This document shows positions 4,228 to 51,119 of a stretch of DNA of 64,000 nt, piece by piece. The notes under the pieces are model-generated. The model saw only the letters and a program-made list of their open reading frames with translations. It had not been told where the DNA came from and made no database searches. The stretch is taken from NCBI GenBank assembly GCA_038087875.1, contig JAXLNO010002359.1, positions 1 to 64,000 of the forward strand, in the 5' to 3' direction. The translations under genes and the position numbers were made by a program. Numbering within the stretch: position 1 is the stretch's first letter; every line of letters starts with the position of its first letter. This DNA is from Malacoraja senta (Eukaryota).

Positions 4228-4297
4228 GAAGGGTCTCGACCCAAAATGTCACCCATTCCTTCTCTCCACAGATGCTGCCTGACCCGGTGAGTTACTC

Positions 4298-6386: not shown

Positions 6387-6422
<36 letters not shown>

Positions 6423-19989: not shown

Positions 19990-20049
19990 TTATGTTTTTA
20001 CTGTTTCAGCATAGATGACAGACTCATCTTCCTTTGAAGAATCAAGGTT
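19990..20049 (-). CDS. Receptor last coding exon NLDSSKEDESVIYAETVKT* (ITIM-like)
   Basis: Acceptor ttctctttcag|AAC, phase 0; TAA at 19990-19992. Confidence 0.65.
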   Translation of the reverse strand, partial: NLDSSKEDESVIYAETVKT

Positions 20050-23000
20050 CTGAAAGAGAAAGAAATACCAATTGTATTTAAGACCGTTGCTGTTGTCGCT
20101 GTTTAGATCAGTAAACAGATTACAGCTTTAATTCATACTTGTACGATCTGGGATTTCATCAACAAGAATCAATATACTTACAGTGCCTGATGCTTGATTG
20201 GAGGACAGTGTATTATCACTGCTGCCTGTAATAAATGCAAACATCACAATTAAAAATGACACTGGTGGATTATGTTGACAAAGGAAACGACAAATGGAAT
20301 ATAAAAGTCTAAAGCTTACTACATTTTGCTCTTCCTGACAGTAGATCAACAAGACATTGAATTCCGGAAAACCCATCTGTCATCTGTATGCTCATACCTC
20401 TGCATTTACAGTGAGCTGCAGGAATGGTCAGCATGAACAAGACACCCTTATATTGCTATGGAAGGAATCGACTGTGAATAAGTGAACTAGCACAGCAATT
20501 GACAGAGCAGCAGGCCAGGCAGGACATAAGCTACGAAGCTGCATCTGTGGCTGGGAAAAGATAACATCAGGGAAGGGTCTCAAGATCCACCAGGGCAGGG
20601 AAAAGTGACAAGGAGAGCTTGGTGAGGGGCCTCGCATAGACCATTACCTTCTAAGAGGTAGGCCAAATCAGTGGAGTGAAGCCCAGTGGCAGGTTAACCA
20701 CCGCAGTCCACAGGGTATCAGCACCCCAGGTGAAGCTCAACCAAGTACTGTCTCACCAACGGACACGAGTCCAGAGCCCAACCAGCCACAGTCAGCGGTA
20801 GAGAGGAAGATGGAAGGTAAAAAGCAGAATGGAGCAGTCACTGGCTGTGGCTGAAGAGATGCTGTCTGGGCTGCCACGTGACCATCTAGAGGCTAACCAT
20901 AAGACACACACCCAGGGCTGATCACCCTGCGGTGGGCCTGCCTGGACTGAGGGTGTCTTGTGATAAAAGGCCGAAACACCCAGTGATGTTGAGGTACACA
21001 ACTGAAGATGTGTCTGATTGGTAGCAAAATCACCTCGTGGTCACCCCCAAGAATATCGGGTGTGAGTTGTGAAGAACCTTGGGGATTGTAACATCCAGTC
21101 CTACTAATCAATATCAAAAATTTGTAATTCAAGGAAGATTGTGCTGATCACTTGTAGCTCAGTCAGGAGTTGTGCAGAAGAATGTTCTTCAGATGGACAT
21201 AAATGGTGTCTTGGTTTCACTTCTCATCACCAACGACAATGCACAACAGTGTTGTAACAGCAGCCTGGATGTCACTGGTTGGATCTCTGGAGTGGCTATT
21301 GTACCCACTTAGAGTAGGCTAGGGGACCAGAACCCACTTAGAGTAGGTTAGGGGACCAGAACACACTCCCTGTAGTTTAGCGGACCAGAACACACTCCCT
21401 GTAGTTTAGGGGACCAGAACACACTCGGAGAAGGCTGGGGAGGTTGAACCCACCAGAGAAGGTTGGACTCCTAACTGAGCCTCAGCTGACTGTCCCACTT
21501 CATGTCGACGGATAGAGTGAGTAACTTTATCCCAGGAATGCCTGATGCTGTTGTAAGGTGGCCAAAGACAGCAGGGTTTCAGACTACTCAGTGCCAATAA
21601 TCCTCACTGTGATAAAAGTTTAAAACATATTTAAATAAAGTCATTTTACCACCAGATGCTTTTGGCTGGAAGGAGATGGATCCATAATGAATACCTTCTT
21701 CTGTATCTGTGGAAATAAGTTGGAAACAAAGAATTTATTTGTATTTAAAAAAGGATGATTTAAGTCAATGTAGGGTCACGATACGAAACGCTGATCATCG
21801 CTTTCCCTCCATAGATGCTGCTCGACCGATAGAGTACCTCCAGCAGTTTGAAAAAACCCTCCATGTAAAGTCACATCTCCTAACCTCCTTGCTTTGACTT
21901 CTTCCTGGGATGGTGGAAATTACAAAGAGAATTTGAGTTAATTTGACTTGTTGAGTTTAGAAGAATGACAATGGTTCTCATGGAAACATAGAAAATTCCA
22001 AAAGGTAGACCAGTCTGGATGGAGGAAGATGTTCCCTGTTGGGGGAGACCATGACCAGGGGTAAAGGTTGAAGACAAGAGACAATAAGGATGAAGATGAG
22101 GAGAACAAAGAATCGGTTACATTCTCTACCACACATTTGTCTGGAGCCAAATCATTCAGTACATTTTAGGAGTTGTTGAATTTATTGACAGATACACAAC
22201 AATGGCGAGGTACAGGTACAATGAAAATGTTGCCTGCAGCAGCATCAGAGGCATTTTGACTAAGGCAACACAACACATAAATGAAGCATAAATTACAAAG
22301 ACCACTGGTTAGTGGAAAAATAGACTGCAAAACACAAACTAGAGACATCATGTGGACTAAGATCAAGGAATATGGGGAGATATGATCAGCTGAGGTTCAG
22401 TTTAGTTTATTGTCATGTGTGCCGATTTTCAGGGAAAAGCTTTTGTTGCATCAGCAGAAAGACAATATATGAATACAATCGATCCCTTTACAGTGGAATA
22501 CAGTGGAATACAATTGATCCATACTGTGGAACAAGGTAAGGAATTGATATTTTTCTCATTAAAACATGGGCAATGTCTGATTTATTGAAAGGTTCCCTCA
22601 GATTTTTCAAGAAAGATTTCTCTGTTCATCAGATTCATCATAAATGTGGTCTAAATTCTGGCAAAAACAATACTGTCCACCATTTGACCACCATGATGGC
22701 TCGAGGCCCCCGACCGAGGAAGAACACAAGTGAAGGACTTGAACTTTATTTCACCTTCCATCACAGTGAGGAATGTGTAGGAGTCACTGTGGTGGATGTT
22801 CATGTTAAAATGTGTTTTTGTGTCTGTTGCTTTTTAATTGTATGACTGACCTGGCCAGTGAAATTCCTCGTATGTTGCAAAACGTACTTGGCGAATAAAA
22901 TCTGATTCTGATTCTGTCTAAGGTGGAAACAAAGAACTGCAGATGCTGGTTAATACACAAAGGGACACAAAGTGCTGGAGTACCACTGCAGGTCAGGCAG

Positions 23001-26000
23001 CATCTCTGGAGGACATGTATAGGTGAGGTTTCGAGTCATGACCCTTCTTCAGACTCAAAAGAAGGGTCTCGATCCGAAACATCACCTATCCACCATCTAT
23101 TTTTTTTTTTTTTTTTAATTTTTTTTATTTTTTTATTAGAAGTATTTTACATTACAGCAATCTGCAATAACGTAAATTTATACAATTCTTGTACCACTTC
23201 TGTTTTTCAACTTTAATAGAAAAAAAGGATAGAAAGAGCTAGCGAAGACAGTCAGTGAGTGAATGAAAAAGTGGTCCAGGAACACAGATGTGAACCTAAA
23301 CCACATGAAATAGTTAAAGAAGAGAAGAAGAAAAAAGAGAAAAAAGAAAATAAGATAGGACAATATGAAAGGGATGAACCTACTTCTTATCTTTACTCAC
23401 CCCTCGCCAGGACTTAAAACCATTTATTATCATCATTTTGTTGCACCCTATGTTTGTAATAAGTCGATATATGGAGACCAAATCTTTTGGAATTGGTCTT
23501 GTTTACCTGCTAGGAGGAATCTCATATCTTCTAGATGTAACAATTCCGACATATTAGAAGTCCACATTTTTATTGTTGGCGTAGGAGCATTTTTCCAAAA
23601 TTTCAGTATAAATTTTGTTGCTATTAAGCCATAACTAAGAAAACTCCTTTGAAACGAAGTCAACTCCAAACTTGCTTCTATTGTTCCAAAAATAATCAGT
23701 TCTGCATTTGGTTTCAGTTTTATTTTAAATAATTTAGTGAAAATTTCAAAAATTTCATTCCAAATTTTTGAATTTTTATACAAAAAACAAAAGAATGTGG
23801 TATAGTTGATTCTTGGACTAGGCATTTATCACAGTTTGCAGAGGTATTTGGGTAAAATTTACTTAATTTAGCTTTTGAATAATAAAATCTATGTAAAATT
23901 TTAAATTGAATCAGAGTATGTCTTACGTTAATCGAACATTTCTGCACATATAATAGATGTTTATCCCAACTCTCTTTCGAGATTTTTATAGCCAATTCCT
24001 GTTCCCATCTATCCACCATCTATTAATGATGCTTAAACCATTCTGAAATGTTGCTGTTATTTTCAGTTTAGAATAAAATCTGACCTAGTGGCAAAGTGAA
24101 TTGGAGGCATTTAATGCTAGATGATATTTTGTGAAGGGATGGTGACTTTTGAAAGGGCAAGTGTTGTCCATTCTTTAGAGAGACACTAACCAAGCTGTTA
24201 ATCAGGATCAACAATAAATTAGGAGTTTGAATATGTTGTTCATGGTGATGTCTCAACATTCATGGGTTGACCATGATAGTCCAGTGAAAATTAGTCAATT
24301 GACCAATGCAGAGTAAGACCTGCAGTTGGATGGGGAAGATTGGGACTGAGGGGTGAATTGACACAAGAGAGACTGTTCAATTGATCAATTAGTTTGTGTG
24401 CTTGAGGTTCCCTTCCTCGCATTCTTGTTACAAAAGTGTGAAATGTGAAATAGTTTGCTTCATCAAATACAACAGCTCTACAACTAGAGATTCATTGACT
24501 GAGTCATCTATTTACCTTCTTGCTTTGTCTTCCTACTCACAGACATATATTCAGTAACACGGCTCATCTCAGGTACTGGGGTCATATTAATTTCTGGAAA
24601 ATAAGTATTATTTTCTGATTAAGACTTTAATCCGGCTTGATTTTAAGAAGCAGCAATCCAGTGTTTAAACTGTACCCCGTTAATAATGAGATCCACCAGA
24701 ATGACCAGGAACATGGCTTCAGATGTATGTCAGAGACATTTAATGATGGGATAAGACCATGTGTATAAAATCAGAGTCCATGGAAACACAGTGTTCCCTA
24801 AATTATGACCATATTAGGATGGTACACAAGGCAAAGTTTTCACTTTAAGTTTGAACCACCAAAGTGCAGTGGAGATACCTTGGTCTCCTGGTTTCCTGGC
24901 CAATATTCATCCCTCAGTAAATAGGAACATGTTGAGGGCAAATTGGAGATCATATTTTCTACATGACTACACTAGCTATACTTCAACTTCTGGCATGTTT
25001 ATTTGATAATGGTTTACACAGGGGATGGTGACACAATCACCATGTGGTCAGATCATTGCAGAACAGCACCTGAAATCATACAGCAGACTCCTCATGGCAA
25101 CGCAGGTAGACAGGTAGACAATCCACATTGCATAAATAATGCTTTAATTGAACACAAAAAGTCTGAAATCAATGTCTCAACAACATAAGCACAAACAGAT
25201 ACTTTTCTTATCCAAACTATATTGTTCGTTTCTCCTTGTAACAAAGATAACATTGTCATTGATAATTTGGGGAATCTGTGCTGCATTAAGGATGTCTTCA
25301 TGTACATTACCTGTAGGTTTGCGCTTTCTTTGACACCACACCACTGCCAGTATAATGACGATGAGAAGAGCCAGACTCCCGATAATTACAACAGTGGTGG
25401 ATCTAAAAGGTTCATTCTCTGTCAAAATAATAAACAGAGTTCACATTTGCAGAATAAATGGATATCATTCAAAAGCTCCCCCAAAGACCAGGCATTAACC
25501 ACACTGACTAATTTAGACCAGAAGTCTTAAGTTTAACTTGTGATCCAGATTCACTGGGACACAAGGTACTGCAGATGAGAGTTTACCAATTAAAGACACA
25601 AAGTGTTGGAGAAACTCAGCAGGTTAGGCAGGTGACATTTCGGGTCGCAGCCCTTTAGTCTGAAGTAGGGTCAAGACCCAAAACCTCACCTATCCATGTT
25701 CTCCAGAGATTCCGCCTGACCCGTTGAGTTACTCCAGCACATTGTGTCTTTTTCCCCAGATTAATTGACCTTACGCAGAAAGATCAGAGAGCCACAACTT
25801 GCCTCAGTAGGCATCAGTTAGAGACTGTAAACATTCACACAAGTTTATATTTCTTGGTTACAATCAGCTGAAATTTCTCAGGCAGGAGATGGGAGCTGAT
25901 GGTTGGCTGATAAAGTAGCCGATTCAGCTGTGAAACTTCCCACTGTACAGTGGACAAATGTCTATCATAGTCTAAGCCTGGAACAATGGTTGAATGAGCA

Positions 26001-29000
26001 CTACTGACAATAGAGTGGGTATTGCCCTCCAGCTTCAATCCTCTCTAACCAGGAGCACAACAACTGTAAACGTTAGAAATACTCAGCCGTTTGAGCAGTA
26101 TCCGTGGAAAGGGAAAGAAGTGAGTTCATGTTTTATGATGAATAAAACGTCAGATTCAAAGAAAGGATCTTTGACAATAGACAATAGGTGCAGGAGTAGG
26201 CCATTCAGCCCCTCGAGCCAGCTCCGCCATTTAATGTGATCATGGCTGGACTTGTTCCTCTTTCACAGTTCCTATATGTCCTGCTGATTATTATTATTAT
26301 TTTTCATTCGGATTTTCAACTAAAATTAATTTTGGTCTCGATGCAGCAGTTTGACTGCTTGACTGCGGGAGAAGAATAAAGAACAGAGAACAGGGAAGAG
26401 ATAAGACTTTTGCCTTCCATCACAGTGAGGAGGTGTTTGGAGATTCACTGTGATGGATGTTTGTGTGGAATTGTGTTAATTGTGTGTTGTTGTTTTTTGC
26501 TGTTATGACTGCAGGAACGAAATTTCGTTGAACCTTGGTGTTAAATGACAATAAATGCCATTCTAATTCTAATTTTAATTCTAATTCTAAAGTACTAAAA
26601 CTGTACTGTGCATGTAACCATTGCATACTGATGTCAATGAGGTTGAACACATTATTATTGCAATCCTAATGAACACATCTTCATGTGTTTTAGTGTAAAA
26701 TTGGAGATGGTTGATCCATGCATTAATTCCACACACCAACTAATCTATTCACTCACTGATTGATATCTCCTGCCCTTTAAAGACAGCTCAACACCCAAAA
26801 GCATCAGTCTGCAATGAGGCCAAAGGATGGAGAGGCTGGTGTGCGCGACCCTTGTAAAATAAAGTTCAACTTCAGTTCTGCTCCATAGTGAGACTGTGCT
26901 AGATGAGCGTACATGGGGAGGCTTCTGCTCAGCCGGGAGCACAGATTTCCAATCTGGGAGGTGGGGACACCACAGTGGGAGTGGGTGTGGGTGGGGGTGG
27001 CCTCTTCCTTGGTGCAGCGGCTGACGGAGCAGGGTTTTACTGGCCCTGAGGCACAGGCAGAGGACAACCAAAACCTTCATTCCTCAGTGGACTCTCAGCC
27101 GAATGTAGTCAGAGCCCTGTTGTCCTCTCCCAGGGGGAGACTGCTGCTCGCCAGGAGTAAGGATTAATAACACCAACCTATAGCACACAGTGACCATCAG
27201 GGAGCAGGTTGCTGTGTTCAGTCAAATAATCACATCATATGGCGCATTGAAGCAGTTGAATCAGCAAGTCAAACTGTAAACATGTCACAAAGAGATGACA
27301 CAATGAATGCGGCACGGTGGCACAGCGGTAGAGTTGCTGCCTTACAGTGAATGCAGCGCCGGAGACCCGGGCTCGATCCCGACTACGGGTGCTGTCTGTA
27401 CGGAGTTTGTACTTTCTCCCTGGGACCTGCATGGGTTTTCTCCGAGATCCTCGGTTTCCTTCCACACTCCAAAGACGTACAGGTTTGTAGGTTAATTGGC
27501 TTGGTAAATGTAAAAATTGTCCCTAGGATAGTGTTAATATGCGGGGATCGCTGGTTGGCGTGGACCCGGTGGGCCGAAGGGCCTGTTTCCGCGCTGTATC
27601 TCTAAACTAAACTAAACAGTAAACTATTTGTAAGATGATTTTCACTACTTTTGTGATCTTTAAGTGGCACAGTTTGGGTGTTATGGCAAAGATCTTCCAC
27701 CAAGCTGCCCACCTTACTATACTGACCTCTGACAAAAAGGTTCACAGTGACACGCTGGTTTTCATACTACTGGACCAGTTTTCATACCTGTGGAGACACT
27801 TATCAACAAGGACAGACATTGATGATGAAATTCCCGATCACCTTCAATGAGATGGCCAACACAGGTCTTGGTCAGTGGTCTGCCAGCAGTAGTGGTCCAT
27901 GTGCTCACATGTGCTTCAGAGACCTGGACTACTTACAATAGAAGTGACCTTATAGGCATGGACAAGAGGTTTGAAGGAAATGTCTATGATTGAGCTCTAC
28001 TTGCAGTAAGACATGGATTGTTAAACGTTATCCAAAAAGAATAGCAACGTGACAAGAACTCTGTGTCGAGATAACGAAGAGCAGAAGCTAAGAAACTTAC
28101 TGTTCACCTGCAGATTATATGGAGTGAAAACCTTGGCTGTGCTTTGATGAAACAAACCACATGTCCATTTCCTTCTTACTCCATCAGCTATTGCAATAAT
28201 CAGCTGCAAATAATTGTTCTCCTGCTTTGTTTGAATGAGATTTTTCTCCTCTACAACTTTGCCTTCATCATTGATCCAAACCAGTCTTATTGACTCAGTG
28301 ACATGAGACACAGAGCAGGTCAGTGTAATGTTTCTTCCCTCAGTCACTGCGCTAGATGGTTCAGTTGTGACTGTGGAAAGAAGAAAATCGTAAAACAATG
28401 AATTTTGTCTGGATTGTGTTGTGTTTTTCTCAGTACTTTGACACCAGTATCTGGCGTTCTAAGTGTGGAAATTTATATTACACAACAAGAGTTAGAGGCA
28501 TAGTCATACAGCATGAAACAATTCGGTCCATTCAGCCCAACTCATCCATGTCGACCAAGATGCTCCATCTAAAATATGTTCCAACATTTGGCCCATATCC
28601 CTCTGCACCATCCATGTACCTCTCCAAGTGTCTTTTCCATAATCATTCACAACAGTTTTGAACTCATTATACAAAGAGCAACCAATGCTCACATCATTGT
28701 CTCTGGCCACAGTTTTGGCCACAACACTCATCCAGGTAAATATTAATCGATAAATTCCACAAAATACACGCAGTTTTAAGCCTCCAGTGAGCCTTCAAAA
28801 ATTAGGATGGGTCGTTGGGGTCAAAGAAACTTGGGGAATGTGTTAAGAGAAGTTGAATGATTTTAAAAATATTTTCGATAGAAGCTCATTTGCACCTTTG
28901 TGAATCACATTTCATCATATTCCCTCTCTTAAGTATAAAACAATGTGTTTTCAGCAAAATAAATGAAAATAACATTTGATGTGATTCCCAATAATGTTGG

Positions 29001-32000
29001 TTTAGGGCAGATTTTGGGTTCAGCAAAATACAAATAAGTTGAAGAGGAAGCTCTGTAGGTAAAATAATTCTTCAAACTTGGGAATTTCTGCTGACAGTGC
29101 AGTCTGTACTCAGATTAGAAACTCTACACCAGTAACTTAATTCTTGAAAGTAGTGACATCCAGTCTCCTACCTGTAACTGTGATTAGGTCAATGGTTACA
29201 TATTTATTTGATCCCGTGGAACATGTGTAAACTCCGGCATCTGCAAATTGCACGGGGACAATACTCACATGGAAATTCTTGCCATTCACATTTCCCTCTG
29301 TGGTTTCCAGTCGATTCCCAAAGTAGCTCCTGTCGACATGTATCGGTTCAGACCTGTGAGAAGAAGCTATTTCCTTCTCTTGATTCTGGAAACGTGGTGA
29401 TCTCCAAGTCCATTTGGTTTCACTGAGCTCAGGTGAAGCTTCACACATCAGGTCGAGTTCATTGTGATCTGTGACTGAGCGATAAACTGTGTACATCTTG
29501 TTATGTAAACCTGTAAGAGAGGGACATGGAACAAAGAATTCGATTTCCACACACGCTGGGACCCCTGGTTCTGGACTCGCCCAACCTGGGGAACATTTTT
29601 CCTGCATCTAGCCTGCCCAATCCCTTAATAATTTTATATGTTTCTATAAGATCCCCTCTCATCCTAAATTTCAGTGAATATATACCCAGTCGATCCATTC
29701 TTTCATCATATGTCAGTCCGCCATTCCAGGAATTAACCTGGTGACCCTATGCTGCACTCCCTCGATAGCAAGAATGTCCTTTCTCAAACTAGGAGACCAA
29801 AACTGCACACAATACTCCAGGTGTGGTCTCACCAGGGCCCCATACAACTGCAGTAGGATCTCTTTGCTCCTATACTCAAATCATCTCGCTATGAAGGCCA
29901 ACATGCCGTTTGCTTTCTCCATTGCCTGCTGTACCTGCATGCTTACTTCACCACGATGTCCAAGTCACCCAAATCATAAAGCTGGTGTCCTGTTGACATC
30001 GCAACAACCTGAAGCTCAGTGCTCTTAAGACAGTGGAATTGATTGTAGACTCAATCCTCCCCTCCTGATTGTAGAGCTCTCCCTCCCCCCCCACTCATCT
30101 TCAACAACACCACAGTCACAACTGTGGAGTCATTTAATTTCTTCGGAATCATCATCTCCAGCGACCTTAAACTCCACAGTCAAAAAGTCCCAACAGAGGA
30201 TGTCCTTCCTGCGGCAGCTGAGGAAACACAACCTGCCACAGGCAATGATAGTCCAATTTTAACACTACCATCATAGAGTCTGTCCTCACATTCTCCATCA
30301 TGGTCTGGTTTGGCTCAGCCACCAAGCACGATACCTGGAGGCTGCAGCGAATCGTCCGATCAGCTGAGAAGGTTATTGGCTGCAACCTTCCCTCCATTGA
30401 TGAATTGTACACTGTAAAAGGGCTGGATGGTTTGGAGTTTGTAAAATGTGTGCAAGATAGGTTTTTTGCAGCAATACATAGAGGTACCTACTAGAGAAGG
30501 GGCAGTGCTGGACCTCCTGTTAGGAAATGAGACAGGGCAGGTGGCGGAGGTATGCGTCGGGGAGCACTTCGGGTCCAGTGATCACAATACCATTAGTTTC
30601 AATATAATTATGGAGAGGGTCAGAACTGGACCTAGGGTTGAGATTTTTGTTTGGAGAAAGGCTAACTTTGAGGAGATGCGAAAGGATTTAAAAGGAGTGA
30701 ATTGGGACATGTTGTTTTATGGGAAGGGTGTAGAAGAAAAATGGAGGACATTTAAGGGTGAAATTTAAAGAGTACAGAATCTTTATGTCCCTGTTCGGTT
30801 GAAAGGAAATAGTAAAAAATGGAAAGAGCCATGGTTTTCAAGGGAAATTGGACACTTGGTTCGGAAAAAGAGAGAGATCTACAATAATTATAGGCAGCAT
30901 GGAATAAATGAGGTGCTTGAGGGGTATAAAGAATGTAAAAAGAATATTAAGAAAGAAATTAGAAAAGCTAAAAGAAGATATGAGGTTGCTTTGGCAAGTA
31001 AGGTGAAAGTAAATCCAAAGGATTTCTACAGCTATATTAATAGCAAAAGGATAACAAGGAATAAAATCGGTCCATTAGAGAGTCAGAGTGGACAGCTATC
31101 TGCAGAGCCAAAAGAGATGGGGGAGATATTGAACAATTTCTTTTCTTCGGTATTCACGAAGGAGAAGGATATGGAATTATGTGAGGTAAGGGAAACGAGC
31201 AGAGTAGCAATGGAAACTGTGAGATTCAAAGAAGAGGAGGTGCGGACACTTTTGAAAAATATGAAACGGATAAGTCTCCAGGTCCTGACAGGATATTCCC
31301 TAGGACATTGAGGGAAGTTAGTGTAGAAATAGCAGGGGCTATGACAGAAATATTTCAAATGTCATTAGAAACGGGAATAGTGCCGGAGGATTGGCGTACT
31401 GCGCATGTTGTTCCGTTGTTTAAAAAGGGTTCGAAGAGTAAACCTAGCAATTATAGACCTGTTAGTTTGACGTCAGTGGTGGGCAAATTAATGGAAAGGA
31501 TACTTAAAGATAATATATATAAGCATCTGGATAAGCAGGGTCTGATTAGGAACAGTCAACATGGATTTGTGCCTGGAAGGTCATGTTTGACTAATCTTCT
31601 TGAATTTTTCGAAGAGGTTACTAGGGAAATTGATGAGGGTAAAGCAGTGGATGTTGTCTATATGGACTTCAGTAATGCCTTTGACAAGGTTCCTCATGGA
31701 AGGTTGGTTAAGAAGATTCAATTGTTGGGTATCAATGGTGGAGTAGCAAGATGGATTCAACAGTGGCTGAATGGGAGATGCCAGAGAGTAATGGTGGATG
31801 GCTGTTTGTCAGGTTGGAGGCCGGTGACTAGTGGGGTGCCTCAGGGGTCTGTGTTGGGTCCACTGTTGTTTGTCATGTACATCAATGATCTGGATGAAGG
31901 TGTGGAAAATTGGATTAGTAAGTATGCAGATGATACTAAGATAGGTGGTGTTGTGGATAATGAAGTAGATTTTCAAAGTCTACAGAGAGATTTAGGCCAT

Positions 32001-35000
32001 TTGGAAGAGTGGATTGAAAGATGGCAGATGGAGTTTAATGCTGACAAATGTGAGGTGCTACATCTCGGCAGGACAAATCAAAATAGGACGTACACGGTAA
32101 ATGATAGCGAATTGAGGAAAGCAGTTGAACAGAGGGATCTAGGAATAACTGTGCATAGTTCCCTGAAGGTGGAATCTCATGTAGATAGGGTGGTAAAGCA
32201 AGCTTTTGGTGTGCTGGCCTTTATAAATCAGAGCATTGAATATAGAAGTTGGGATGCAATGTTAAAATTGTACAAGGCATTGGTGAGGCAAATTCTGGAG
32301 TATGGAGTACAATTTTGGTCGCCTAATTATAGGAAGGATGACAACAAAATAGAGAGAGTACAGAGGAGATTTACTATAATGTTGCCTGGGTTTCAGCAAC
32401 TAAGTTACAGAGAAAGGTTGAACAAGTTAGGTCTTTATTCTTTGGAGCGCAGAAGGTTAAGAGGGGACTTGATAGAGGTCTTTAAAATAATGAGCGGGTT
32501 AGACAGAGTGGACGTGGATAAGCTTTTCCCATTGAGAGTAGGGAAGATTCAAACAAGGGGACATGACTTGAGAATTAAGGGACGGAAGTTTAGGGGGAAC
32601 ATTAGGGGGAACTTCTTTACTCAGAGAGTGGTAGCTGTGTGGAATGAGCTTCCAGTGGAAGTGGTGGAGGCAGGTTCGATGTTATCCTTTAAAAATAGAT
32701 TGGATGGGTATATGGACGGGAAAGGAATGGAGGGTTATGGTCTGAGTGCAGGTAGATGGGTCTAGGGGGAAGTATTTATTTTTAATTAAAAAAAAAAAAA
32801 AAAAAATCTAAAAATGTTCGGGACGGACTTGAAGGGCCGAGATGGCCTGTTTCCGTGCTGTTATGGTTATATGGTTATATGGTTATATGGTAATATCATC
32901 TCTGACCCCTCTCACCCTGGCCACAAACTCTTTGAATCACTTCCCTCTGGCAGGTGAGTCCTGACTGTCAAAGCAGCCACAGCCAGACATAAAAACACCT
33001 TCTTCCCACGAGCCGTAGCTCTACTCAACAGGCAAAAGTCGGTAGCCTCTTTTCACTCCGGTACTTTATTTTCACATGTTTAAATTATAATGTTTTATTT
33101 TTAATTGTCTGCTGTATATCGTGTTTTTACCATATGCGAGCAAAGCACTGTCAAATTCCTTGTGTATGATTACTTGGCCAATAAAATGTGATTCTGATTC
33201 TGATATTTCCTCTGCATTTATACTTGAATTAGTTCATATTTTCCTGTTCTGTTATACACTGAAAACTAGATGTTATTTCCATCACTGGATATTATTCTCT
33301 TTGATTCATGCAGGTGAACTGAAATGAATCCCTTGGTTCTCCTGTGTGGCTCCATCAATCTTAGTGCCACCATTTTATATTTCCACCATGTCCCAGGGTA
33401 AAGGCAATGTCCACATCCTGCAGTGTGGAAGCCCACGGGTGGAGTCAGTGCTCACTATACAACATGTGGAACAGTTTGATATCAAGAACTATTTAATACC
33501 TGCTGCAAGGCAGCTTTGGACTCACCCTGATCCACTTCGACATTGGTGTCTCCAGTGAGAATAATGGAGGTATTTTCCTGCACTTCCCATGTGTACAGAT
33601 TGGGATTTCCTATTCCAATGTGTTGGATCATCAGATAGACGGCGTTATTCAGACGGATCTGATCAGCGTTGTTCCTCCTGTTCTGCTGAGATGAGCCGCT
33701 TGGTTTCCAGTGAAGACTGACGGTATCTGGGAGTCTGGAGATGGTACAGCTGAGGGTGATGTCACTGCCCATCACTGGCCTCGGTGAGTCGGCCTCAACT
33801 GTGGAAACAGACACATGTGGTTCAGTTCACCAACAGCTTTCTGAACTACTGTGGGCAGAATTGTCTTTTTCCTGCAGACAGACAGTCGGCTGAATGTTGA
33901 GCTGCCGTGCTCAGTGATGTCATCAACACTTCCTGGTAGTGACCACCTGTCCCACTCGCCCCCTCGTCTCCCACATCAACACTTCCTGGAAGTGACCACC
34001 TGTCCCCCTCGCCCCCTCGTCTCCCACATCAACACTTCCAGGTAGGGATGTTTTTAGTATAGTAGAAACACAGAACTGCAGATGCTGGTTAATATGTAAA
34101 AGGACATAAAGTGCAGGAGTAATTCAGCAGGTCTGGTAATATGAATATCACTGCCCCTTAATTGGTACACGTGACAATAAAAGACCTTTGAACTCTAGAG
34201 AACATAGATAGGTAACGTTTCAGGTTGAGACCCTTCTTCAGACTGATTATATTTCTTGGATGTCTTTAACAGAGATTATATGGGAGTGAATAAAATCATG
34301 AGAGGCATATCTATAGTAAACGCAAATGGTCTTTTTTCCAGGATTGGGGAATCAAAAACTAGATAGTACATGTTTAAGGTGAGAGGGGCAGATTTGATAT
34401 ACCCCTTAATATTAGGGGCAGTTTTTTGACAAAATGTGTGGTACATGAACATACTTTATGGAAAGATCGAGCAGAGGAAGTGTTTCATATAGGTACAGTA
34501 TTTAAAGGGCATTTAAACAGGTATATGGGGAAAAAAGGTTAAAATGATATGGGCCAAATGAGGGCAAATTGGATGTTTAGATGGGTAGTTGGTCAGTATG
34601 GATGAATTGGGCCAAAGGGCCTGTTTCAGTGCTGTGTGACACTATGACTCTATTACCTTTAATCCCAAATAGTTCCCACTGTCTCATGATTTTCCCAGCG
34701 GGCTGTGTCTGATTCCAGGTGAACAGTCCTGCAAGTTTGAATATGGGCATCCTGATCCTCAGATTAAGGGTACCCCAATCCGCATGCATCCTCTGGGAGA
34801 TGCCTGGTATTTGATTGTACTCATCACTCCATTGTACGGCCCACTGCTGATCTTCTCTGCGGAAAGTGGCCAATCGCTTTGTGGTTTGTTGCCCTGAGTG
34901 TGGCCTCCATTCCAAGTCAATGGGGCCATTTCCAGGACTGTCTGGTCCTTTCAATACAAAGTTGCCTTCCTGATGGAAAAAGTACATATAATGTCCACTT

Positions 35001-38000
35001 CCTGTAGGAAAAGAGAACAAATGTGTAAATGTTGGACAATAATTTTTCACTGACCTTGTCATTAGCAATATTGCAGAGAATTAATCTTTACTAAGTTGTA
35101 CGTTATAATTCATCATCATGGAACAGCATGGAAACAGGCCCTCTGCAGCAATCTGTCCACGCTGACCAGTGGGTCTCCATGGAGACACAAGAAACTGCAG
35201 ATTGTGGAATGTTGATCAAACGCAAAGAGTTGGAGAAACTCAATGGGTCAGGCAGCATCTGTGGAGGGAATGGATTGATGACGTTTCATGTCAGGATGCA
35301 TTCTCAGACTGATGGAATGGGAGAGTGACAACTGGGGAAGGGAAGTAGGCATGAGGCAAAGCATGGTGAGTGATAGGTGGATATAGGTGGGGAATGGTGA
35401 TGAGTAGCTGGATGGAGATAATGACAAAATGGAGGGGTGAAATGGAGACAAAAGGTTGTCAGTATAAACATGTGTAATAACAGGATCCATACATAAGAAG
35501 AAGTTGTTTGTTATAGTAAACACACAGAGCTCAAATACTTAGGTGTTGTAAGCTCAAGCTCAGCAACGAATCTAACTAGATGCTGGAATAACAGACTCGA
35601 TAATATGATGGATGTTTGAGTACACAGCGGCATGCAGTAAAACATAACATAGGTCAACTGATACGGACTGATCTACAGTCACATCAGTAACAGAGGGAGG
35701 GATATGGGTGGAAGTGGTGCAAGAACATAAAAGGAAAACTCTGCAATTGGAAGGGGTGGGAAATGAGTTGAAAGAGGAAGGGAAGAGAATAGGATAACTA
35801 GGTAGTGGGATAAATGCGTGCACAATGAAGGGGGGCGGGGGGAAGTGGGGTTCGGGAAGTGTTATTTGAAATTTGAGAATCCATTGATCATAACAGAGTT
35901 AGACCACTCAAACTGGAAGAAAATATTCCACTCAAATTTCAGGATCAATAAGCGACATCAAAACTTAATCTTGACTCTAAGTATGAAGAACAAACCCTTG
36001 TCACTTACCACGGGGCTCCTGATATTACGGGACAAAAAGCCGGGGCAGGTCTTGTTGAAACAAACCACATCTCCAGTTCCCTCTCCCTCTCTCAGCTTTC
36101 TGAATTACCAGACTCAGTGATTTCTCTTCCACAGTCAGTGTCTTTTCTCCAACACTTTTGCCATCGCCATTGATCCAAACCAGTCTCATTGACCCAATGA
36201 CGTGAGACAGAGAGCAGGTCAGGGTAACGGTGTCTCCCTCAGTCACTGCATCAGACGGTTCAGCTGTGACTGTGGAAACAAGCAGGTTGTTTACATTTTA
36301 AACAATAAGTTCATCAGTAAACTCAGTGGCAACATTCTGTCTCCTACCTTTCACTGTAATTAGATCAATGGCGAAAAAAGGATTTGATTCCAGATAACAT
36401 GTGTAAACTCCGGCATCTTGAAACAAAACGGGGACAATCCTCACACTGAAATCCTTGCCATCGAAGGGTTTCCCTGAGGTCACCAGTCGATTCCCGAAGT
36501 CGGTCCCATTGACATTGATGGGCTGAGAACGTCTTGCAGATGCTATTACTTTCTGCTGTTGAAGGTGAAGAGGTGTCCAGAACCACTGAGCACTGAAATA
36601 GCCATCACCATAACTATTATCGCAAACCAGGTGAAGTTCACTGTGACCTGTGCTGGAGCGGTAAAGTGTGTATGTCCCATTATATAAATCTGTATCAGAG
36701 AGACAGAGGATAACTCCTTTCAGTATTACAGTTACCGTGCCATACAGAGATTCTCAACCGTCTTCTTATGAACATTCGTGGTGTTTTGTTCAGCTGATCA
36801 AGTTTCAAATGTGACATCTTTCATGAATGCCGCACTAAACTCATCAGATGTTTATAAAATACAATGTCCTGTACGGCAGTAAATTGCAGTGAAGTTTGGA
36901 TATTCCACTCTACATTTCAACATTAGGTTCGCCCCCACACCCGGACTGTCCGGGAATCTCCCGGGATGGAATGAAACCTCCCGGAGACTCCCGAGAGCGA
37001 TCTGGGAGGTGAATGTCTCTGTCAGTCTGTCTGCAGGAGGTGGTGCTGGTTCAGGCTGCGGACAGAAGCAGCCCAGAGGATGCCTGCGCGGGGACTGACC
37101 CGGACAGGTTGGCATTTCAAGTGGGTCGGGTCTTCCCGTCCCTTCATTCCCATTATTCCCACCATCCCTCTCCCATTCACACCCACTGATTCCCTGTCCT
37201 TCCCTGTTCCCGGGTCCTGCTCCCAGCTGAATGCTGATCCGAAGCCCGAGTCTGCAGCAGCTGGAATCACTTCAAGCAACACCAGACTCGGAGAGAAGGG
37301 TCAGTGAGGGGAGAGGGGATGGATTGTTGTTCAGTGCTGGTGTGTGAGCCGGGACCCCCAGTGTGAGTGTGAGCAGCAAGTGCTGGTGGTTGTCATGGTG
37401 ACTACACTTTCTATCTGACACTTTGAGATCAGTATCTCAGTCTCAGATACTGGAGCATTGATGGCAAGATAAACTGACAAAATACTTTACTGAAGAATGG
37501 TTACAGAAAGACGTCCCCCTCCTGTGCTGTGTATCTGTCACACAGAGACAAGCAGGCAGCTGCTCCACAGAGAGACTTTCTGTAAACTTCTCCCTGATCA
37601 TTGCAGCATTTTATACTGGAGAGCAGTTGGTCACTGCCACAGTTCTTCACAGGGCGCACACATAATATTACAAGAAGCACCGTGATACAAGTGTCTACTT
37701 GATATCCAATGGGAGGTGTTTACACTCACTGTTGTTCATAGTAAAATCTCCGTTACTTGTGTGAACAATGTTTCCGTTTTCCTGCACATCACACACATAC
37801 AGCTTCCCATCCTCCACTATAACGTGTTGAACCATCAGATAGACCGTGTTATCCAGGCGGATCTGATCATTGTTGCTCCTGTTCTGCTGGGATGAGTCCA
37901 TGAGTCTCCAGTGAAGACAGACTGTATCTGAGAGTCTGGAGATGGTGCAGCTGAGTGTGATGTCACTGCCCAGCAGAATGATCCGTGGACTTGCCTCAAC

Positions 38001-41000
38001 TGTGAAAAACTGTGAGTAGTGGTTTGTACAAGTCCAATGATTGGGCTCAATCTCACCTCAACTAGAAACCTAGATCCGCCCCTCATTCTTCTAAACTCCA
38101 GCTAGTCCAAGCCCAGAGCCACAAACACTCATCATCCCCTGGGGCATTTTCATAAACGTTAGTTTTATGTTGCATTACTTCAGACTGCAGTGCAATCTCT
38201 GCACCATTCTGCAGTTTTGCTTTTGTTGCATTTTTTAATGTACCTTTTATTATAATTTACTTTATCTGAACAATGAATGTGTTTTACCCAAATGTATATG
38301 ACAATGAACTAATATGAATCTAAATCTGAATTTGATATTGTCCAGACTACACAGACATAGTGTTATTGTTCCTCACTTTGGCAGTGTTCACACATTTTGT
38401 GTACATAACACTCTTGACACTCATGCTGCATCCTGAGATTATACCAATTCAAGTGTTTCAGAGCTTTGTACATTAGATTTAGCTCGGCGGGGACTGGTGG
38501 CAGAAGGTCCATGGACTGTAGTTCTATTCCACAATGCCTTTGCTTTGTCTGCACTGATCTTCAGTGTGTCCCTCAGCATGTACTCCTGCAGCCTAGAATA
38601 TTCTGCAATGGAGATTTCGCTGGGGAAAACATGAAGATCAAAGTAGTTGGATCCAACCTCATTCACTGTATCTCGGCAAACGTTAGAGCAATGAACAAAT
38701 CTCAATCCATTTACACCTGTGGAGAATCATCTATAGGAGGCAAAGGCCTTGTTCATCCTCTGCTAAAGCTCCCAAGCAGTTGGAATGGGTCTGATGTCAC
38801 CAACTTTTAGAAGTAAACACATTTATTAATATTGAATATTTCATTCATTTTATCATTAAAGAGTCTAATTCTACAACAACGATTAGTATTGATTCCTGAA
38901 GAGTCTCCACCCCTGCAGGCACCGGATCTGGGAGCAGTTTTCCCAGTGCCAGTGTCGGGGAATATCAGCATATTCCTGCTCCAGTCCTGGTCTCCACGTG
39001 GAGAAGTGAAGGGGAGCGCTGGCAGATTCACCACAAGAACTGTCAGCAAGTTCTGGAATTCCTCGTTGTGAAACGCATGGGTGGAAGTCCTGAAGCTGTT
39101 CATATTCACACAGGTAAATGCCGGCTGTTCACCGTGACACTGCTGGTGCAACCGGCAACACCCTGACCAGTGAATGCAAACAACGTTTAGATGTAACTGG
39201 ATTGATACGTTTGTCCATTTGTCCCTGTCATGTCTCCCCCGACCGCCCTCAAGGTGGGAACTCTCCCACCAGTGTAAGTTCCACAGATGAAGGACTTCCT
39301 CTGGGATCTCAACCAAGTGAGGCATGGACCTGGTTCACTGGGTAACATTGAGCAGCAGTGTCACTCGACAATCTCACCCCAGGCCCACAGAATCAATGAA
39401 GAAAAATCTTTCCCCCAATTGTTTCATTGGGAGATTCATCGGGTGGAAGAAGTCTCACAATTCCCGCCATATTTCATCATTACACGTGACATTATTTACA
39501 GAGAAACATACTCTTGATCCGTGTCTCGCCCACTCACCTTTGATCCCATATATTTCATATTGTTTCAGGATCTGGTTCCTCGGATGTGTTTCGGTCAAAG
39601 TGAACAATCCTGACCATTTAAATGTGGGGTTTTTTATTGCCAGATTACCAGTACGGAGATCCACAACCACCTCCTGGTTCTTGTCTCCGTTTTCCCAGCC
39701 ATGGCCCCACTGTTTGCTCCACGTGCCCCTGTCCTTGTCCGCGATGCGGAGAGTTACCACTGTCTGTTTTCCCCGCCCTGAGTGTGGTTCCCATTCCCAG
39801 ACAAGAGTGGTACTCCCAGGATTGTCCGGTCCTTTTAACACAATGTTGCCTTCATTATCCAAGAAATAAATCTGATTTCTGATTTCTGTTGGAAATAGGA
39901 AAAATGTAGGAATTAACATTTTAAGCACATTTCCTCCACTCCATGTCTGTAATTATTAATTTTGAATTTCATTTATTTCCAGAATGTTTTGATCTCCCAC
40001 AGAACCTCCAGTGAGACGGACACAGTTTGTGAATAGATGGCTGGCTGGAATAACCTGGCCTGATCCAGGGATACTTCATGACATGAGAAGAGTGAGTGGG
40101 AGAAAGACGGAGGTGGAAGGGCGTTTGTGTCGGGTCTCCAGCCGGTGTTCCCTGTGACGGGGTTTCCTGATGTGGGTGGAGATCAGGCCGATCCTATACA
40201 CACCGCATCCCCGGCCCTTGTCGGACAGACCTGGAACAGAGTAAACATGCTCCTGCCTCCCTGCCTGCTCCTCATTCCACAGTGATTTACAACATAGAAC
40301 AGTTCAGAACAGGAACAAGCCCCTCGGCCCACAAGGTCTATGTTGAGCATAATGCCACGACCAACTCTTATCTGCCTACACTCTCTATTCCCTGCATTTC
40401 CATGTGCCTATCCAAAAGTCTCTTAAATCCCATTCACACATCTCCTTCCATCATCACCAGCAGCATGTTCCAGCCACTCACCACTGTAAAATACTTGTCC
40501 TTCTCATCTCCTTCACACTTTGCCCCTCTCACCTAAAAGCCCTCCATGCCCTCTTGTATTTGATATTTCCATCCTGGGGAAAAGATTCTGACTGTCTTCA
40601 TTGACCTTGCCGCTCATAATTTGGTAGAATTCTATCAAGCCTCACTTCAATGACAAACATTCCAGAGAAAACAATCCAAGTCTATTCAACCTCTCCTTGT
40701 AGCTAATATCCAGTAACACAGGCATAATTCTTGTAAACCTTCTCAGCCCTGTCTCCAAAGCCTCTGCATCTTTTGGGGCATCCAGAACTGCATGTAATGC
40801 TTGAAATCCGGCCTAACCAGAGTCCTACAATGCTGCATCACATCCTGACTTCCTGACTCTTATACCCAATGATCCACCAAAGGCATGCCATCTGCCTTCT
40901 TTGTCACTCTATCTACCTGTATTACCATTTTCAGAGAGTTTGGGTCTTGGATCCCAAGGTCCCTCTGTACATCAATGCTGTTAAGGGCCTTGCCGTTAAT

Positions 41001-44000: not shown

Positions 44001-44302
44001 GGGGCCATTTCTGACTTTGAAAAGGACCATGTTGGTGCAGGGGAAGGGGAGGGAGGGAGCTAATGGGGGAGGCTCAGAAATGGAGCTCCAGCAAGGATGG
44101 TGTGGATTTGTGGGACGTGGAGAGGAAAGTGAGATTGACAATGGGGTGTGGGTTTACACGGACAATGATAAAGTAAAGCAAGGTGATTGTGACCGGTGAA
44201 GAGAAAGCACTTACTCTGTGTGGAAACAGTTCGAAGCAGGAAAACAAAGACACCGAACATCAAACCAGCTGGCAAACTGCTGCAGAAAAACCTGGGCCTC
44301 AT
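19990..44302 (-). CDS. Type I membrane IgSF receptor: leader, 8 Ig domains (2 x [V*-C2-V-C2]), TM, ITSM/ITIM-type tail. 14 coding exons, 960 codons if the TAA at 36025-36027 is read through; 430 aa if not.
   Basis: Hand-spliced join(44302-44215, 39885-39538, 37999-37730, 36689-36348, 36269-36009, 35001-34657, 33798-33526, 29510-29172, 28370-28101, 25418-25311, 24593-24516, 21706-21650, 20225-20182, 20049-19990) = 2883 nt. Every intron is GT-AG with matching phase. Confidence 0.85.
20182..20225 (-). CDS. Receptor cytoplasmic exon (G)SSDNTLSSNQASGT
   Basis: tttattacag|GC ... ACT|gtaagt; 44 nt, phase 1 to 0, fits both neighbours. Confidence 0.65.
21300..21430. repeat. About 29-30-bp tandem repeat (…gtttaggggaccagaacacactc…), four units
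   Basis: Directly visible. Confidence 0.7.
21650..21706 (-). CDS. Receptor cytoplasmic exon DTEEGIHYGSISFQPKASG carrying a canonical ITIM (IHYGSI)
   Basis: ttatttccacag|AT ... GGT G|gtaaaa; 57 nt, phase 1-1. Confidence 0.75.
23101..24008 (-). mobile_element. 5'-truncated L1-clade LINE (ORF2 C-terminal zf-RVT region, 3'UTR, poly(A)) with 15-bp TSD
   Basis: CTATCCACCATCTAT at 23086-23100 and 24009-24023; poly(T) from 23101; WEQEL...IQFKILHRFYYS...CDKC...HSFVFC motif. Confidence 0.88.
24516..24593 (-). CDS. Receptor cytoplasmic exon EINMTPVPEMSRVTEYMSVSRKTKQE (ITSM-type TEYMSV)
   Basis: ttattttccag|AA ... GAA G|gtaaat; 78 nt, phase 1-1. A competing internal donor TCT|gtgagt lies at 24541/24540. 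Confidence 0.7.
25311..25418 (-). CDS. Receptor transmembrane exon (K)NEPFRSTTVVIIGSLALLIVIILAVVWCQRKRKPT
   Basis: About 20-residue hydrophobic run followed by an RKRK stop-transfer; ttattttgacag| and ACA G|gtaatg; phase 1-1. Confidence 0.85.
27309..27617 (+). mobile_element. HE1-like tRNA-derived SINE
   Basis: cacggtggcacagcggtagagttgctgcc...gggctcgatcc...gggcctgtttccgcgctgtatctctaaactaaactaaa; homologous to 3916-4227. Confidence 0.8.
28101..28370 (-). CDS. Receptor Ig domain D8 (C2-type, WxC)
   Basis: VTTEPSSAVTEGRNITLTCSVS...LVWIN...RRKWTCGLF...YNLQVN; 270 nt, phase 1-1. Confidence 0.9.
29172..29510 (-). CDS. Receptor Ig domain D7 (V-type)
   Basis: ELDLMC...KWTW...FGNRL...IVPVQFADAGVYTC...IDLITVT; 339 nt, phase 1-1. 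Confidence 0.9.
29555..29948 (-). mobile_element. CR1 3' coding fragment
   Basis: DRLGIYSLKFRMRGDLIETYKIIKG remnant. Confidence 0.75.
29950..33200 (+). mobile_element. Rex1/Babar-type LINE 3' fragment split by a CR1 insertion (pieces at about 29950-30415 and 32890-33200)
   Basis: NNLKLSALKTVELIVD..., VWFGSATKHDTWRLQRIVRSAEKVIGCNLP; collinear with the intact copy at 46130-47140. Confidence 0.75.
30416..32890 (+). mobile_element. 5'-truncated CR1 LINE with a nearly intact RT (485-aa ORF 31308-32765) and (GGTTATAT)n tail
   Basis: NYRPVSLTS, YMDFSNAFDKVPH, GVPQGSVLGP and ISKYADDTK motifs; upstream frames broken by a stop and a frameshift. Confidence 0.93.
33526..33798 (-). CDS. Receptor Ig domain D6 (C2-type; F-strand Cys replaced by Trp)
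   Basis: VEADSPRPVMGSDITLSCTISRLPDTVSLHW...NLYTWEVQEN...; 273 nt, phase 1-1; paralogous to D2. Confidence 0.9.
34657..35001 (-). CDS. Receptor Ig domain D5 (cysteine-free V-like)
   Basis: GSGHYMYFFHQEGNFVLKGPDSPG...EWRPHSG...LNLRIRMP...AGLFTW...WELFGIK; 345 nt, phase 1-1; paralogous to D1. Confidence 0.88.
36009..36269 (-). CDS. Receptor Ig domain D4 (C2-type, WxC) with in-frame TAA at 36025-36027
   Basis: VTAEPSDAVTEGDTVTLTCSLS...LVWIN...GNWRCGLF...FVP*YQEPR; acceptor tgtttccacag| and donor G|gtaagt both intact; 261 nt. Confidence 0.9.
36348..36689 (-). CDS. Receptor Ig domain D3 (V-type)
   Basis: ELHLVC...QWFW...FGNRL...IVPVLFQDAGVYTC...IDLITVK; 342 nt open frame, phase 1-1. Confidence 0.9.
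37730..37999 (-). CDS. Receptor Ig domain D2 (C2-type)
   Basis: VEASPRIILLGSDITLSCTISRLSDTVCLHW...KLYVCDVQEN...; 270 nt, phase 1-1. Confidence 0.9.
39538..39885 (-). CDS. Receptor Ig domain D1 (cysteine-free V-like)
   Basis: IRNQIYFLDNEGNIVLKGPDNPG...WEWEPHSG...GNLAIKNPTFKWSGLFTL...YEIYGIK; 348 nt, phase 1-1. Confidence 0.88.
40285..43530 (-). mobile_element. Old, heavily decayed CR1-clade LINE (ORF1 esterase, endonuclease and RT remnants), with a Penelope-like fragment nested at about 41575-41830
   Basis: Fragments PGARM, HFNARSIVGNVDELRAQI, GGIALLIRE, SGVLYGSLPGP, STFAD spread across frames. Confidence 0.7.
43560..44060 (-). mobile_element. Possible decayed Penelope-like RT fragment
   Basis: Weak nucleotide resemblance to Penelope RT motifs; no clean ORF. 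Confidence 0.3.
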
Positions 44303-45409: not shown

Positions 45410-46130
45410 GGAGTGGGAGGCAACCGTGGCTGACAAGTGAAGTTAGGGATAGAATAAAATTAAAGAAAAGATGTGTAACACAGCAAAGAGTAGCCGGAAG
45501 CCAGAGGATTGGGAAACTTTCATAGGACAACAGAAGGAAACAAAACGGGCAATACGGGCTGAAAAGATGAAGTACGAAGGGAAGCTGGCCAGGAATATAA
45601 AGAAGGACAGTAAAAGCTTCTTTAGATATGTTAAGGGAAAAAGAATAGCAAAGTCAAATGTGGGTCACTTGAAGGCAGACACGGGTGAAATTATTATGGG
45701 CAACAAGGAAATGGCAGAAGAGTTGAATAGGTACTTCGGATCTGTCTTCATTAAGGAAGACACAAACAATCTCCCAGGAGTATTGGAGGACAGAGGATCT
45801 AAGGGGGTAGAGGAACTGAAAGAAATTTTCATTAGGCGAGAAATAGTATTGGGTAGGCTTATGGGACTGAAGGATGATAAATCCCCTGGGCCTGATGGTC
45901 TGCATCCCAGGATCCTCAGGGAGGTGGCTCTAGAAATAGTGGACGCATTGGTGATGATTTTCCAATGTTCAATAGATTCAGGATCAGTTCCTGTGGATTG
46001 GAGGATAGCTAATTTTATCCCAATTTTCAAGAAAGGAGCGAGACAGTAAGCGGGGAATTACAGACCAGTTAGCCTGACTTCAGTGGTGGGAAAGATGCTG
46101 GAGTCAATTATTAAAGAGGTAATAATGGGG
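45410..46130 (+). mobile_element. CR1 ORF2 internal fragment
   Basis: KSPGPDGLHPRILRE...WRIANFIPIFKKG (ORF 45471-46049). Confidence 0.85.
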
Positions 46131-47140: not shown

Positions 47141-47649
47141 TATTGAAACATGGAAAAGAGGAGCAGGAATGGATTATTTGGCACATTGAGATCGTTCCGT
47201 CATTCATCACAACCTTCTCTGTCAACCCCATATTACAATTCTCTCCCTATAATCATTGATGCCATTTGTGTCAAGAAAAAACCTATCCCCTACTTAACTG
47301 GATTCATTTACTAGTCATCTACCATTTTTTCCGTTGGGTGAATTTTAAAGGCTCACTATATTCAGAATGAAGACATTTTTCCACATCTCAGCCCTTCAGG
47401 TCTTAAGTCTGTGTCCCCTTGTTCTAGATCCTCCAGTCGCCAAATAAAATCCTTTACAAATGGAGTTTGTCTCGCTCTGCCTGAATTCTGACTGATTTAG
47501 TGAGGTCCCGTTCATCTCTTCCAAACTCCAGTGACTACTGGCCCAGTGGCTCCTCCTCACCTCACACGTTAGCCCTGCTATTCAAAGAATCAGTCTGGTC
47601 AGCTTTGGCTGAATTCCTTTTGTGGCAGGAAAACCCTTTCTCGGGTATA

Positions 47650-51110: not shown

Positions 51111-51119
51111 ATCCACATT

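Follow-up and report, generated by a model that had tools for sequence, protein, structure and literature searches.

The gene described here lies on the minus strand of a 64,000-nucleotide stretch of DNA from the skate Malacoraja senta (positions 1–64,000 of contig JAXLNO010002359.1, assembly GCA_038087875.1; hereafter the window, in which all coordinates are given) and spans positions 44302 to 19990. It has the layout of a type I receptor with eight immunoglobulin (Ig) domains, a transmembrane helix and a cytoplasmic tail, and belongs to a family without a name, of which it is probably a disabled copy. Fourteen exons, delimited by reading their flanks, have AG/GT borders and phases that fit together; joined, they give 2,883 nt, corresponding to 960 codons plus a terminal stop. 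They comprise a leader exon, eight Ig exons (all of phase 1-1), one exon for the transmembrane segment and four for the tail. Both the span and the length agree with an earlier inspection of the letters (the sequence-only reading), and all of the motifs quoted there were found at their places on the minus strand. The 960-residue protein that it described as encoded is, however, not encoded as assembled, owing to an in-frame TAA at codon 431 (36025–36027) that replaces a conserved tyrosine 16 nt upstream of the donor of the D4 exon.

Exon 1 (44215–44302) contains the start codon at 44302 (MRPRFF) and the signal peptide MRPRFFCSSLPAGLMFGVFVFLLRTVSTQ and ends at a phase-1 GTAAGT donor; the leader and its junction with D1 are also present in the thorny-skate proteins P0005 and P0006. 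The eight Ig exons encode domains D1–D8, which fall into four types (A, D1/D5; B, D2/D6; C, D3/D7; D, D4/D8). The type A domains D1 (exon 2, 39538–39885) and D5 (exon 6, 34657–35001) are V-like and cysteine-free, and positions 34657–35000 of the latter are covered exactly by a contig of sequencing run X1. The type B domains D2 (exon 3, 37730–37999) and D6 (exon 7, 33526–33798) and the type D domains D4 (exon 5, 36009–36269, 261 nt) and D8 (exon 9, 28101–28370) are C2-like. The type C domains D3 (exon 4, 36348–36689), with a canonical cysteine pair, and D7 (exon 8, 29172–29510) are of the V-set, both contain IDLITV and FGNRL and are followed by introns that begin alike, with GTAGGAGAC. The motif W.CGLF occurs at 36075 and 28167. 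The F-strand WxC of the CD4/LAG-3 layout is present in D4 (WRC) and D8 (WTC) but not in D2, which has YVC, or in D6, where the F-strand cysteine is replaced by tryptophan (YTW).

Exon 10 (25311–25418) encodes a stalk and the uncharged transmembrane helix TTVVIIGSLALLIVIILAVVW, followed by the stop-transfer sequence CQRKRKPT; its assignment draws, among other evidence, on tblastn searches with the tails of relatives. Exon 11 (24516–24593) carries TEYMSV (24555–24538), which resembles an immunoreceptor tyrosine-based switch motif (ITSM), and exon 12 (21650–21706) carries IHYGSI (21692–21675), a canonical immunoreceptor tyrosine-based inhibitory motif (ITIM) that is kept in nearly all ITIM-type relatives. 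The 44-nt exon 13 (20182–20225; GSSDNTLSSNQASGT, phase 1 to 0) is needed because VIYAETV (20019–19999) would otherwise be out of frame, and its segment also occurs in thorny-skate P0028 and Rhinoraja P0098. Exon 14 (19990–20049) encodes NLDSSKEDESVIYAETVKT and the stop; its YAET is a degenerate form of the C-terminal ITIM of the family, VIYAQI.

The eight domains form two V-C2-V-C2 modules, as had been proposed. Cognate domains share 40% (D1/D5), 59% (D2/D6), 51% (D3/D7) and 52% (D4/D8) amino-acid identity and 65–72% DNA identity, compared with 12–29% amino-acid identity for non-cognate pairs, and even the weakest cognate pair, D1/D5, is matched by BLASTP with an E value of 4e-28. Pfam assigns D3 (E = 9e-7) and D7 (E = 1.5e-7) to the V-set and D2, D4, D6 and D8 to generic Ig models, and gave no match for D1 or D5. 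An AlphaFold2 (AF2) model of the window D1 shows a confident V-type sandwich (predicted local distance difference test, pLDDT, 92). The description of the N-terminal V domain as disulfide-free was borne out: D1 has no cysteine, and among solved structures it comes closest in fold to the V domains of 2B4/CD244 and CD58, which lack a disulfide.

The modules belong to a large multigene family that has no name in databases and no description in the literature searched. A D1/D5 profile run against 1.84 billion cluster representatives returned only 36 proteins, all from this family and 22 of them at E ≤ 1e-10, and word-based searches with three relatives yielded many more members. Sharks are represented by Scyliorhinus, Carcharodon, Cetorhinus, Heterodontus, Heptranchias, Pristiophorus, Rhincodon, Stegostoma, Hemiscyllium, Chiloscyllium and Ginglymostoma, and rays and skates by Mobula, Hypanus, Hemitrygon, Pristis, Narcine, Amblyraja, Leucoraja and Rhinoraja. 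The elephant shark, a chimaera, also has a member, for which no contig record encoding it was found. More distant relatives occur in coelacanth, sturgeons and eel, and the suggested confinement to cartilaginous fish does not hold. Members are labelled `uncharacterized' or carry the automatic names `obscurin-like', `CD276 antigen homolog' or `VCAM1-like'; no relative has a database name of its own, in agreement with the earlier remark that it was not recognised as a named gene. No description was retrieved from the literature by searches with the accessions of relatives, with `obscurin-like' and nurse shark, or for ITIM receptor families of elasmobranchs.

Hidden Markov models of the four domain types, mapped onto 111 relatives, reveal architectures of ABCD, ABCDABCD (the commonest, ∼990 residues) and ABCDABCDABCD, as well as a catshark model with fifteen domains (approximately four modules). 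RefSeq isoforms lacking single domains also exist (ABD, ACD, ABDABCD, ABCDABD and ABCDACD). Tandem clusters are indicated because LOC numbers run consecutively on single chromosomes. The window gene contains the type A signature YF..EGN.VLKGPD.PG..WEW.PHSG...AGLFT...FGIK, and its D1 is 81–82% identical to thorny-skate members; the type B consensus of the family is LYxCEV. It shares the ordered A-B-C-D modules, the VPYYxExSG joint, the transmembrane helix and the ITIM tail, with two exceptions: a stop replaces the first tyrosine of YY, and YAET stands where the family has YAQI. When 88 modules were placed in a maximum-likelihood tree with sturgeon and eel as the root, the membrane-distal modules separated from the membrane-proximal ones in two clades (local support 0.92 and 0.96). 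Each contains sharks and rays, and D1–D4 and D5–D8 of the window are placed in the expected clades. Since both clades hold sharks and rays, the doubling is older than the shark/ray split and is a family-wide trait rather than something that happened in this gene alone.

The two modules are parts of a single gene. Run X1 covers exons only, with zero depth in the long introns, a pattern typical of RNA, and at ∼92–95% identity it derives from a related organism or a paralogue. One of its contigs contains all of D5 and 59 nt of D4, joined GT..AG from 36009 to 35001; a second links D2 (37730) with D3 at ∼36677, the first 12 letters having diverged, and a third leads out of the D5 end into letters that match the start of D6. 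All junctions of the model are present in skate RefSeq proteins, one of which, from thorny skate, runs unbroken through D3-D4-D5, and the 1-kb D4–D5 intron contains no leader-like open reading frame (ORF). The junction contig, the RefSeq protein across D4–D5 and the lack of an intronic leader ORF rule out two separate genes for D1–D4 and D5–D8, an outcome that the sequence-only reading had named as one that would overturn it.

An annotated little-skate relative, RefSeq P0101 (MKGPDSPG...), begins inside D5; a leader and D1–D4 are open just upstream, and judged by this locus P0101 is a truncated annotation. In Leucoraja erinacea CM054017.1 (locus L001), correctly spliced and open leader and D1–D4 exons occupy 5186–9251 upstream of LOC129701493, outside its model, which starts at an internal methionine in D5; the little-skate gene is probably under-annotated.

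The typical tail of the family contains LYSNxNE (a YxN motif), AEYMSV or AEYATV and two canonical ITIMs, (D/E)IHYGSI and SSVIYAQI. The ITIM/ITSM tail assigned to the window gene stands in part: IHYGSI is a canonical ITIM and TEYMSV is ITSM-like, but the latter holds for this subgroup only and is not a family trait, as AEYMSV, not an ITSM, is found in most relatives, and VIYAETV, with threonine at Y+3 where relatives carry VIYAQI, is not an ITIM. The window lacks the YxN exon, and its intron between the transmembrane and first tail exons measures 717 bp, compared with 6.2 kb including the YxN exon at the little-skate locus. A search of the window for this exon led to positions 25249–25310, just past the donor of the transmembrane exon, where the read-through GNVHEDILNAAQIPQI resembles a decayed YxN exon (...EDxSHLYSNxNEIQQ...) that has lost its tyrosine. 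Among 175 relatives fetched, 65 have ITIM-type tails and 15 combine a transmembrane lysine (e.g. GYLLVKLAVA) with a short tail; none has both. From these sequences the family appears to consist of paired inhibitory and activating receptors, and the lysine-bearing members may pair with an ITAM-bearing adaptor (ITAM, immunoreceptor tyrosine-based activation motif).

In fold, the four-domain module is closest to CD4 and LAG-3. The AF2 model of little-skate D1–D4 (pLDDT 88, predicted template-modelling score 0.86) has single long strands that continue across the D1/D2 and D3/D4 boundaries. A strand running through the V-C2 boundary is the hallmark of the CD4 rod. Three structure comparisons place CD4 or LAG-3 first, in keeping with the CD4/LAG-3 layout noted previously. 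In Foldseek searches of the PDB with the module LAG-3 and CD4 come first; in the Swiss-Prot part of the AlphaFold database the first 17 matches, each spanning the four domains, are without exception CD4 or LAG-3 (E = 2e-20 to 3e-18), followed by IGSF2/3/8, pIgR and Ly-9 at values approximately two to four orders of magnitude weaker (near 1e-16); and VIA-align gives Z scores of 18.1–15.4 for four-domain CD4, 14.1 for LAG-3 and ∼12.8 for antigen-binding (Fab) fragments. When a four-domain family profile (86 sequences) was compared with PDB sequences, the best contiguous match was again LAG-3, and the C-D pair aligns with LAG-3 D1-D2 and once more with D3-D4, including the WxC and the terminal Y-x-L-x-V.

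CD4 and LAG-3 have been defined by a V-C2-V-C2 layout, WxC on strand F of both D2 and D4, and tail motifs, and the genuine shark CD4 and LAG-3 have been identified as other genes (PMC10768021). The window gene has the layout but neither the WxC in D2 and D6 nor the tail motifs: a regular-expression search of the 83-residue tail found neither the CD4 Cx(C/H), whose absence had been pointed out before, nor the LAG-3 (F/Y)xxL(D/E), and the CD4-specific Pfam models gave no match. Orthology to CD4 or LAG-3 is ruled out by these absences and by the existence of shark CD4 and LAG-3 as distinct genes (PMC10768021). The likeness comprises V-C2-V-C2 in phase-1 exons, rod-like V-C2 pairs, WxC on strand F of the fourth domain and, for LAG-3, an inhibitory-type tail. 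The differences are a sequence identity of only 13–24%, a module that is repeated one to four times in the present family, and a multigene cluster with activating-type counterparts. The modelled module is thus closest to CD4 and LAG-3 in fold, but is neither.

Other receptor families share single features. D1 alone is most similar in Foldseek to 2B4/CD244 (E = 5e-7, template-modelling score 0.72–0.78) and CD58, with nectin-1, MPZ and NITR close behind, and the D1 profile gave no significant match among PDB sequences. The CD2/SLAM family resembles the skate proteins in its membrane-distal V domain without a disulfide, in the D1 fold near 2B4/CD58 and in one TxYxxV in the window copy, and Ly-9 is also V-C2-V-C2; however, over the whole module Ly-9 reaches 4.6e-16 versus 2e-20 for CD4/LAG-3, skate D3 and D7 are ordinary disulfide-bonded V domains, and of the SLAM switch motif TxYxx(V/I), several copies of which mark that family, the window tail has only one, which is not conserved among its relatives. 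Teleost G6f-like (G6fL) is a single-pass membrane protein with four Ig-like domains, whose tail combines a conserved Grb2-type YxN and an ITAM (PMC3528668). In the ESM Atlas, `g6f-like' clusters are the top rows by shape and also stand high when rows are ranked on language-model features, with CD4 clusters nearby, and most members of the present family have a YxN (LYSNxNE) in the tail. Unlike G6fL, and G6F (LY6G6F), the family has ITIMs rather than an ITAM, and the window tail has neither the YxN exon nor an ITAM. Kinship with G6fL is only a lead.

The paired Ig-type families (KIR/LILR, SIRP, CEACAM, fish NITR/LITR and skate MDIR) are alike in their tandem clusters of ITIM-tailed members and short-tailed members with a basic transmembrane residue, their variable domain number and their often broken copies, but differ in domain types and module. 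CEACAM was rejected, as its profile match (E = 7e-14) arises by adding up six weak repeat matches (best independent E value 0.016). B7-H3/CD276, which provides the automatic NCBI name of some short members and the top single-sequence PDB match (E = 1e-12), was rejected as well: the match covers a V-to-C junction only, and there are no CD276 or PD-L1 (B7-family) chains among the structural matches listed. The skate MDIR receptors of Cannon et al. (2006) reportedly have V-type domains like those of CD300, pIgR and TREM. The 89 matches of a skate member include no MDIR-named or Raja eglanteria protein, and pIgR is only a mid-level profile match.

The TAA (36027–36025) is the single internal stop in the 960-codon frame, and D8 has tyrosine at the matching site. 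It is unavoidable by normal splicing, because exon 5 contains no phase-1 donor between WRC and the stop. In runs X1, X2, X5 and X7 the plus-strand base at 36025 is G, which restores TAC (Tyr); X7 alone contributes 18 contigs there, presumably from paralogues. An alignment of 23 family proteins (∼950–1,030 residues from 12 species; all except one have the complete set of eight domains) has tyrosine, once phenylalanine, at this site in every sequence, with a boundary consensus of VPYYxExSG, and thorny-skate XP_032885417 is continuous across D4–D5 (FVPYYQEPRGCGDSIYFFHQEGN). The little-skate locus L001 aligns collinearly with the window over the whole gene, leader through final exon and introns alike, at 84–92% nucleotide identity; all eight of its Ig exons are open and the stop site reads FVPYYQEPR. 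On the evidence of these sequences, the TAA is private to this genome among the runs and relatives compared. As nine exon junctions lie downstream of the stop, nonsense-mediated decay would be expected by the usual rule, and the window copy is most likely to be a null allele or young pseudogene, unless it is rescued by skipping of D4 or the base was assembled wrongly.

Several observations weigh against a disabled gene. Apart from the TAA, all exons are open and all splice sites are intact, and dN/dS (the ratio of nonsynonymous to synonymous substitution rates) against the little-skate locus is 0.43–0.98, and the parts on either side of the stop do not differ clearly; any disablement must therefore be recent. 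The copy lacks the YxN exon and its C-terminal ITIM is degenerate, yet thorny-skate P0028 has the same tail, which suggests that this tail is a conserved subtype and not a product of decay. The only DNA contig that confirms the TAA, a 119-nt contig of run X3 from the window's own species (35936–36054), identical to the window across the site, may come from the assembly's own sample, so that the TAA could be an error or a single allele in a heterozygous animal. In that event an intact 960-residue inhibitory receptor would be made: the change is a single base (C to A on the coding strand) relative to every other run and paralogue, the remainder of the gene is intact and paralogue-rich families are prone to mis-polishing. 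Given that the X3 contig nonetheless agrees with the window and that gene death is common in such clusters, we consider this unlikely.

A functional product could also arise despite the TAA if exon 5 were skipped, since its 261 nt are phase-symmetric, as are all Ig exons (phase 1-1), and would be removed in frame to leave a seven-domain ITIM receptor (D1-D2-D3-D5-D6-D7-D8) from exons and splice sites that are otherwise intact, much as RefSeq isoforms of relatives lack single domains. The required junction (36348 to 35001) was not seen, however, and the sole junction observed at the D5 acceptor, from another organism (X1), comes from the D4 donor. Moreover, in the model D3 and D4 together make up a rigid V-C2 rod, a V domain directly after a V domain is atypical for the family, and only skipped forms that keep a C2 after the V are common, which makes this route improbable. 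Use of the truncated frame itself, giving a secreted 430-residue D1–D4 protein as a soluble decoy for the ligand that membrane-bound paralogues recognise, appears highly improbable. The TAA does coincide exactly with the end of a complete four-domain module, a signal peptide and four folded domains preceding it, and zebrafish CD4-2.2 is predicted to be secreted (Takizawa et al. 2023; PMC10768021). Against this, the nine downstream junctions predict nonsense-mediated decay; no AATAAA or ATTAAA was found in the D4–D5 intron, so there is no obvious intronic-polyadenylation route to a soluble form; and the TAA occurs in no relative examined and is hence not a conserved design. On balance, we regard the locus as a member of an unnamed type I receptor family, and this copy as probably disabled by a TAC-to-TAA change at codon 431.

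The flanks of the gene hold only repeats, fragments of long interspersed nuclear elements (LINEs) and a C2H2 zinc-finger ORF. Tandem C2H2 zinc-finger ORFs with HTGERPF linkers occupy 1921–3685 (minus strand) in a GC-rich region (66% GC at 2–4 kb), and long CT/GA-rich simple repeats with seven runs of N (1,400 N in total) lie at 4272–9100 and 13500–14000. Within the gene, the D6–D7 intron contains LINE-type retrotransposon ORFs antisense to it (30448–32765, plus strand), including a 485-residue reverse-transcriptase ORF with a YADD motif (31308–32765). Similar fragments are found at 10728–12581, 45471–52435 and 60098–60733, and LINE fragments are all that the ORF list contains for 53395–61377. 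The D4–D5 intron contains a short interspersed repeat (35052–35419) with very high summed contig depth over all runs and many loose ends at 35231–35288.

The ectodomain of the family consists of one to four copies of a four-exon module, comprising a cysteine-free V-like domain, a C2, a V and a C2 with WxC, with V-C2 pairs modelled as rods like those of CD4 and LAG-3. To judge from its motifs, an intact ITIM-type member would bind a ligand, upon which Src-family kinases may phosphorylate the IHYGSI ITIM and nearby tyrosines and the SH2 phosphatases SHP-1 or SHP-2 may be recruited to restrain an activating receptor. The short-tailed sister genes, whose membrane helix contains a lysine, would rely on an ITAM adaptor for signalling, which would make the family a paired one. 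As assembled, the window copy cannot give an eight-domain receptor, and its mRNA would be a target of nonsense-mediated decay.

Cartilaginous fish are the oldest living vertebrates with immunity based on antibodies, T-cell receptors and the major histocompatibility complex (MHC), and their innate Ig-type receptors are poorly charted. The window locus is one more, probably disabled, copy in a family that is large, with many loci per genome, and is conserved in sharks, rays, skates and a chimaera; such copies can escape gene annotation. Its members are candidate regulatory receptors of natural killer-like or myeloid cells and, as the module resembles CD4 and LAG-3 most, could inform the origin of CD4, LAG-3 and G6F. 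A bolder proposal, which we hold to be doubtful, is that (A-B-C-D)n is an undescribed sister lineage of CD4, LAG-3 and G6F that is still paired and multi-copy in cartilaginous and basal bony fish, and that the stop in the window copy, placed exactly at the module boundary, might yield a soluble four-domain decoy. If the sister lineage were real, the ligands and linkage of these receptors could show what role the ancestor of CD4 and LAG-3 had before it became an MHC class II co-receptor.

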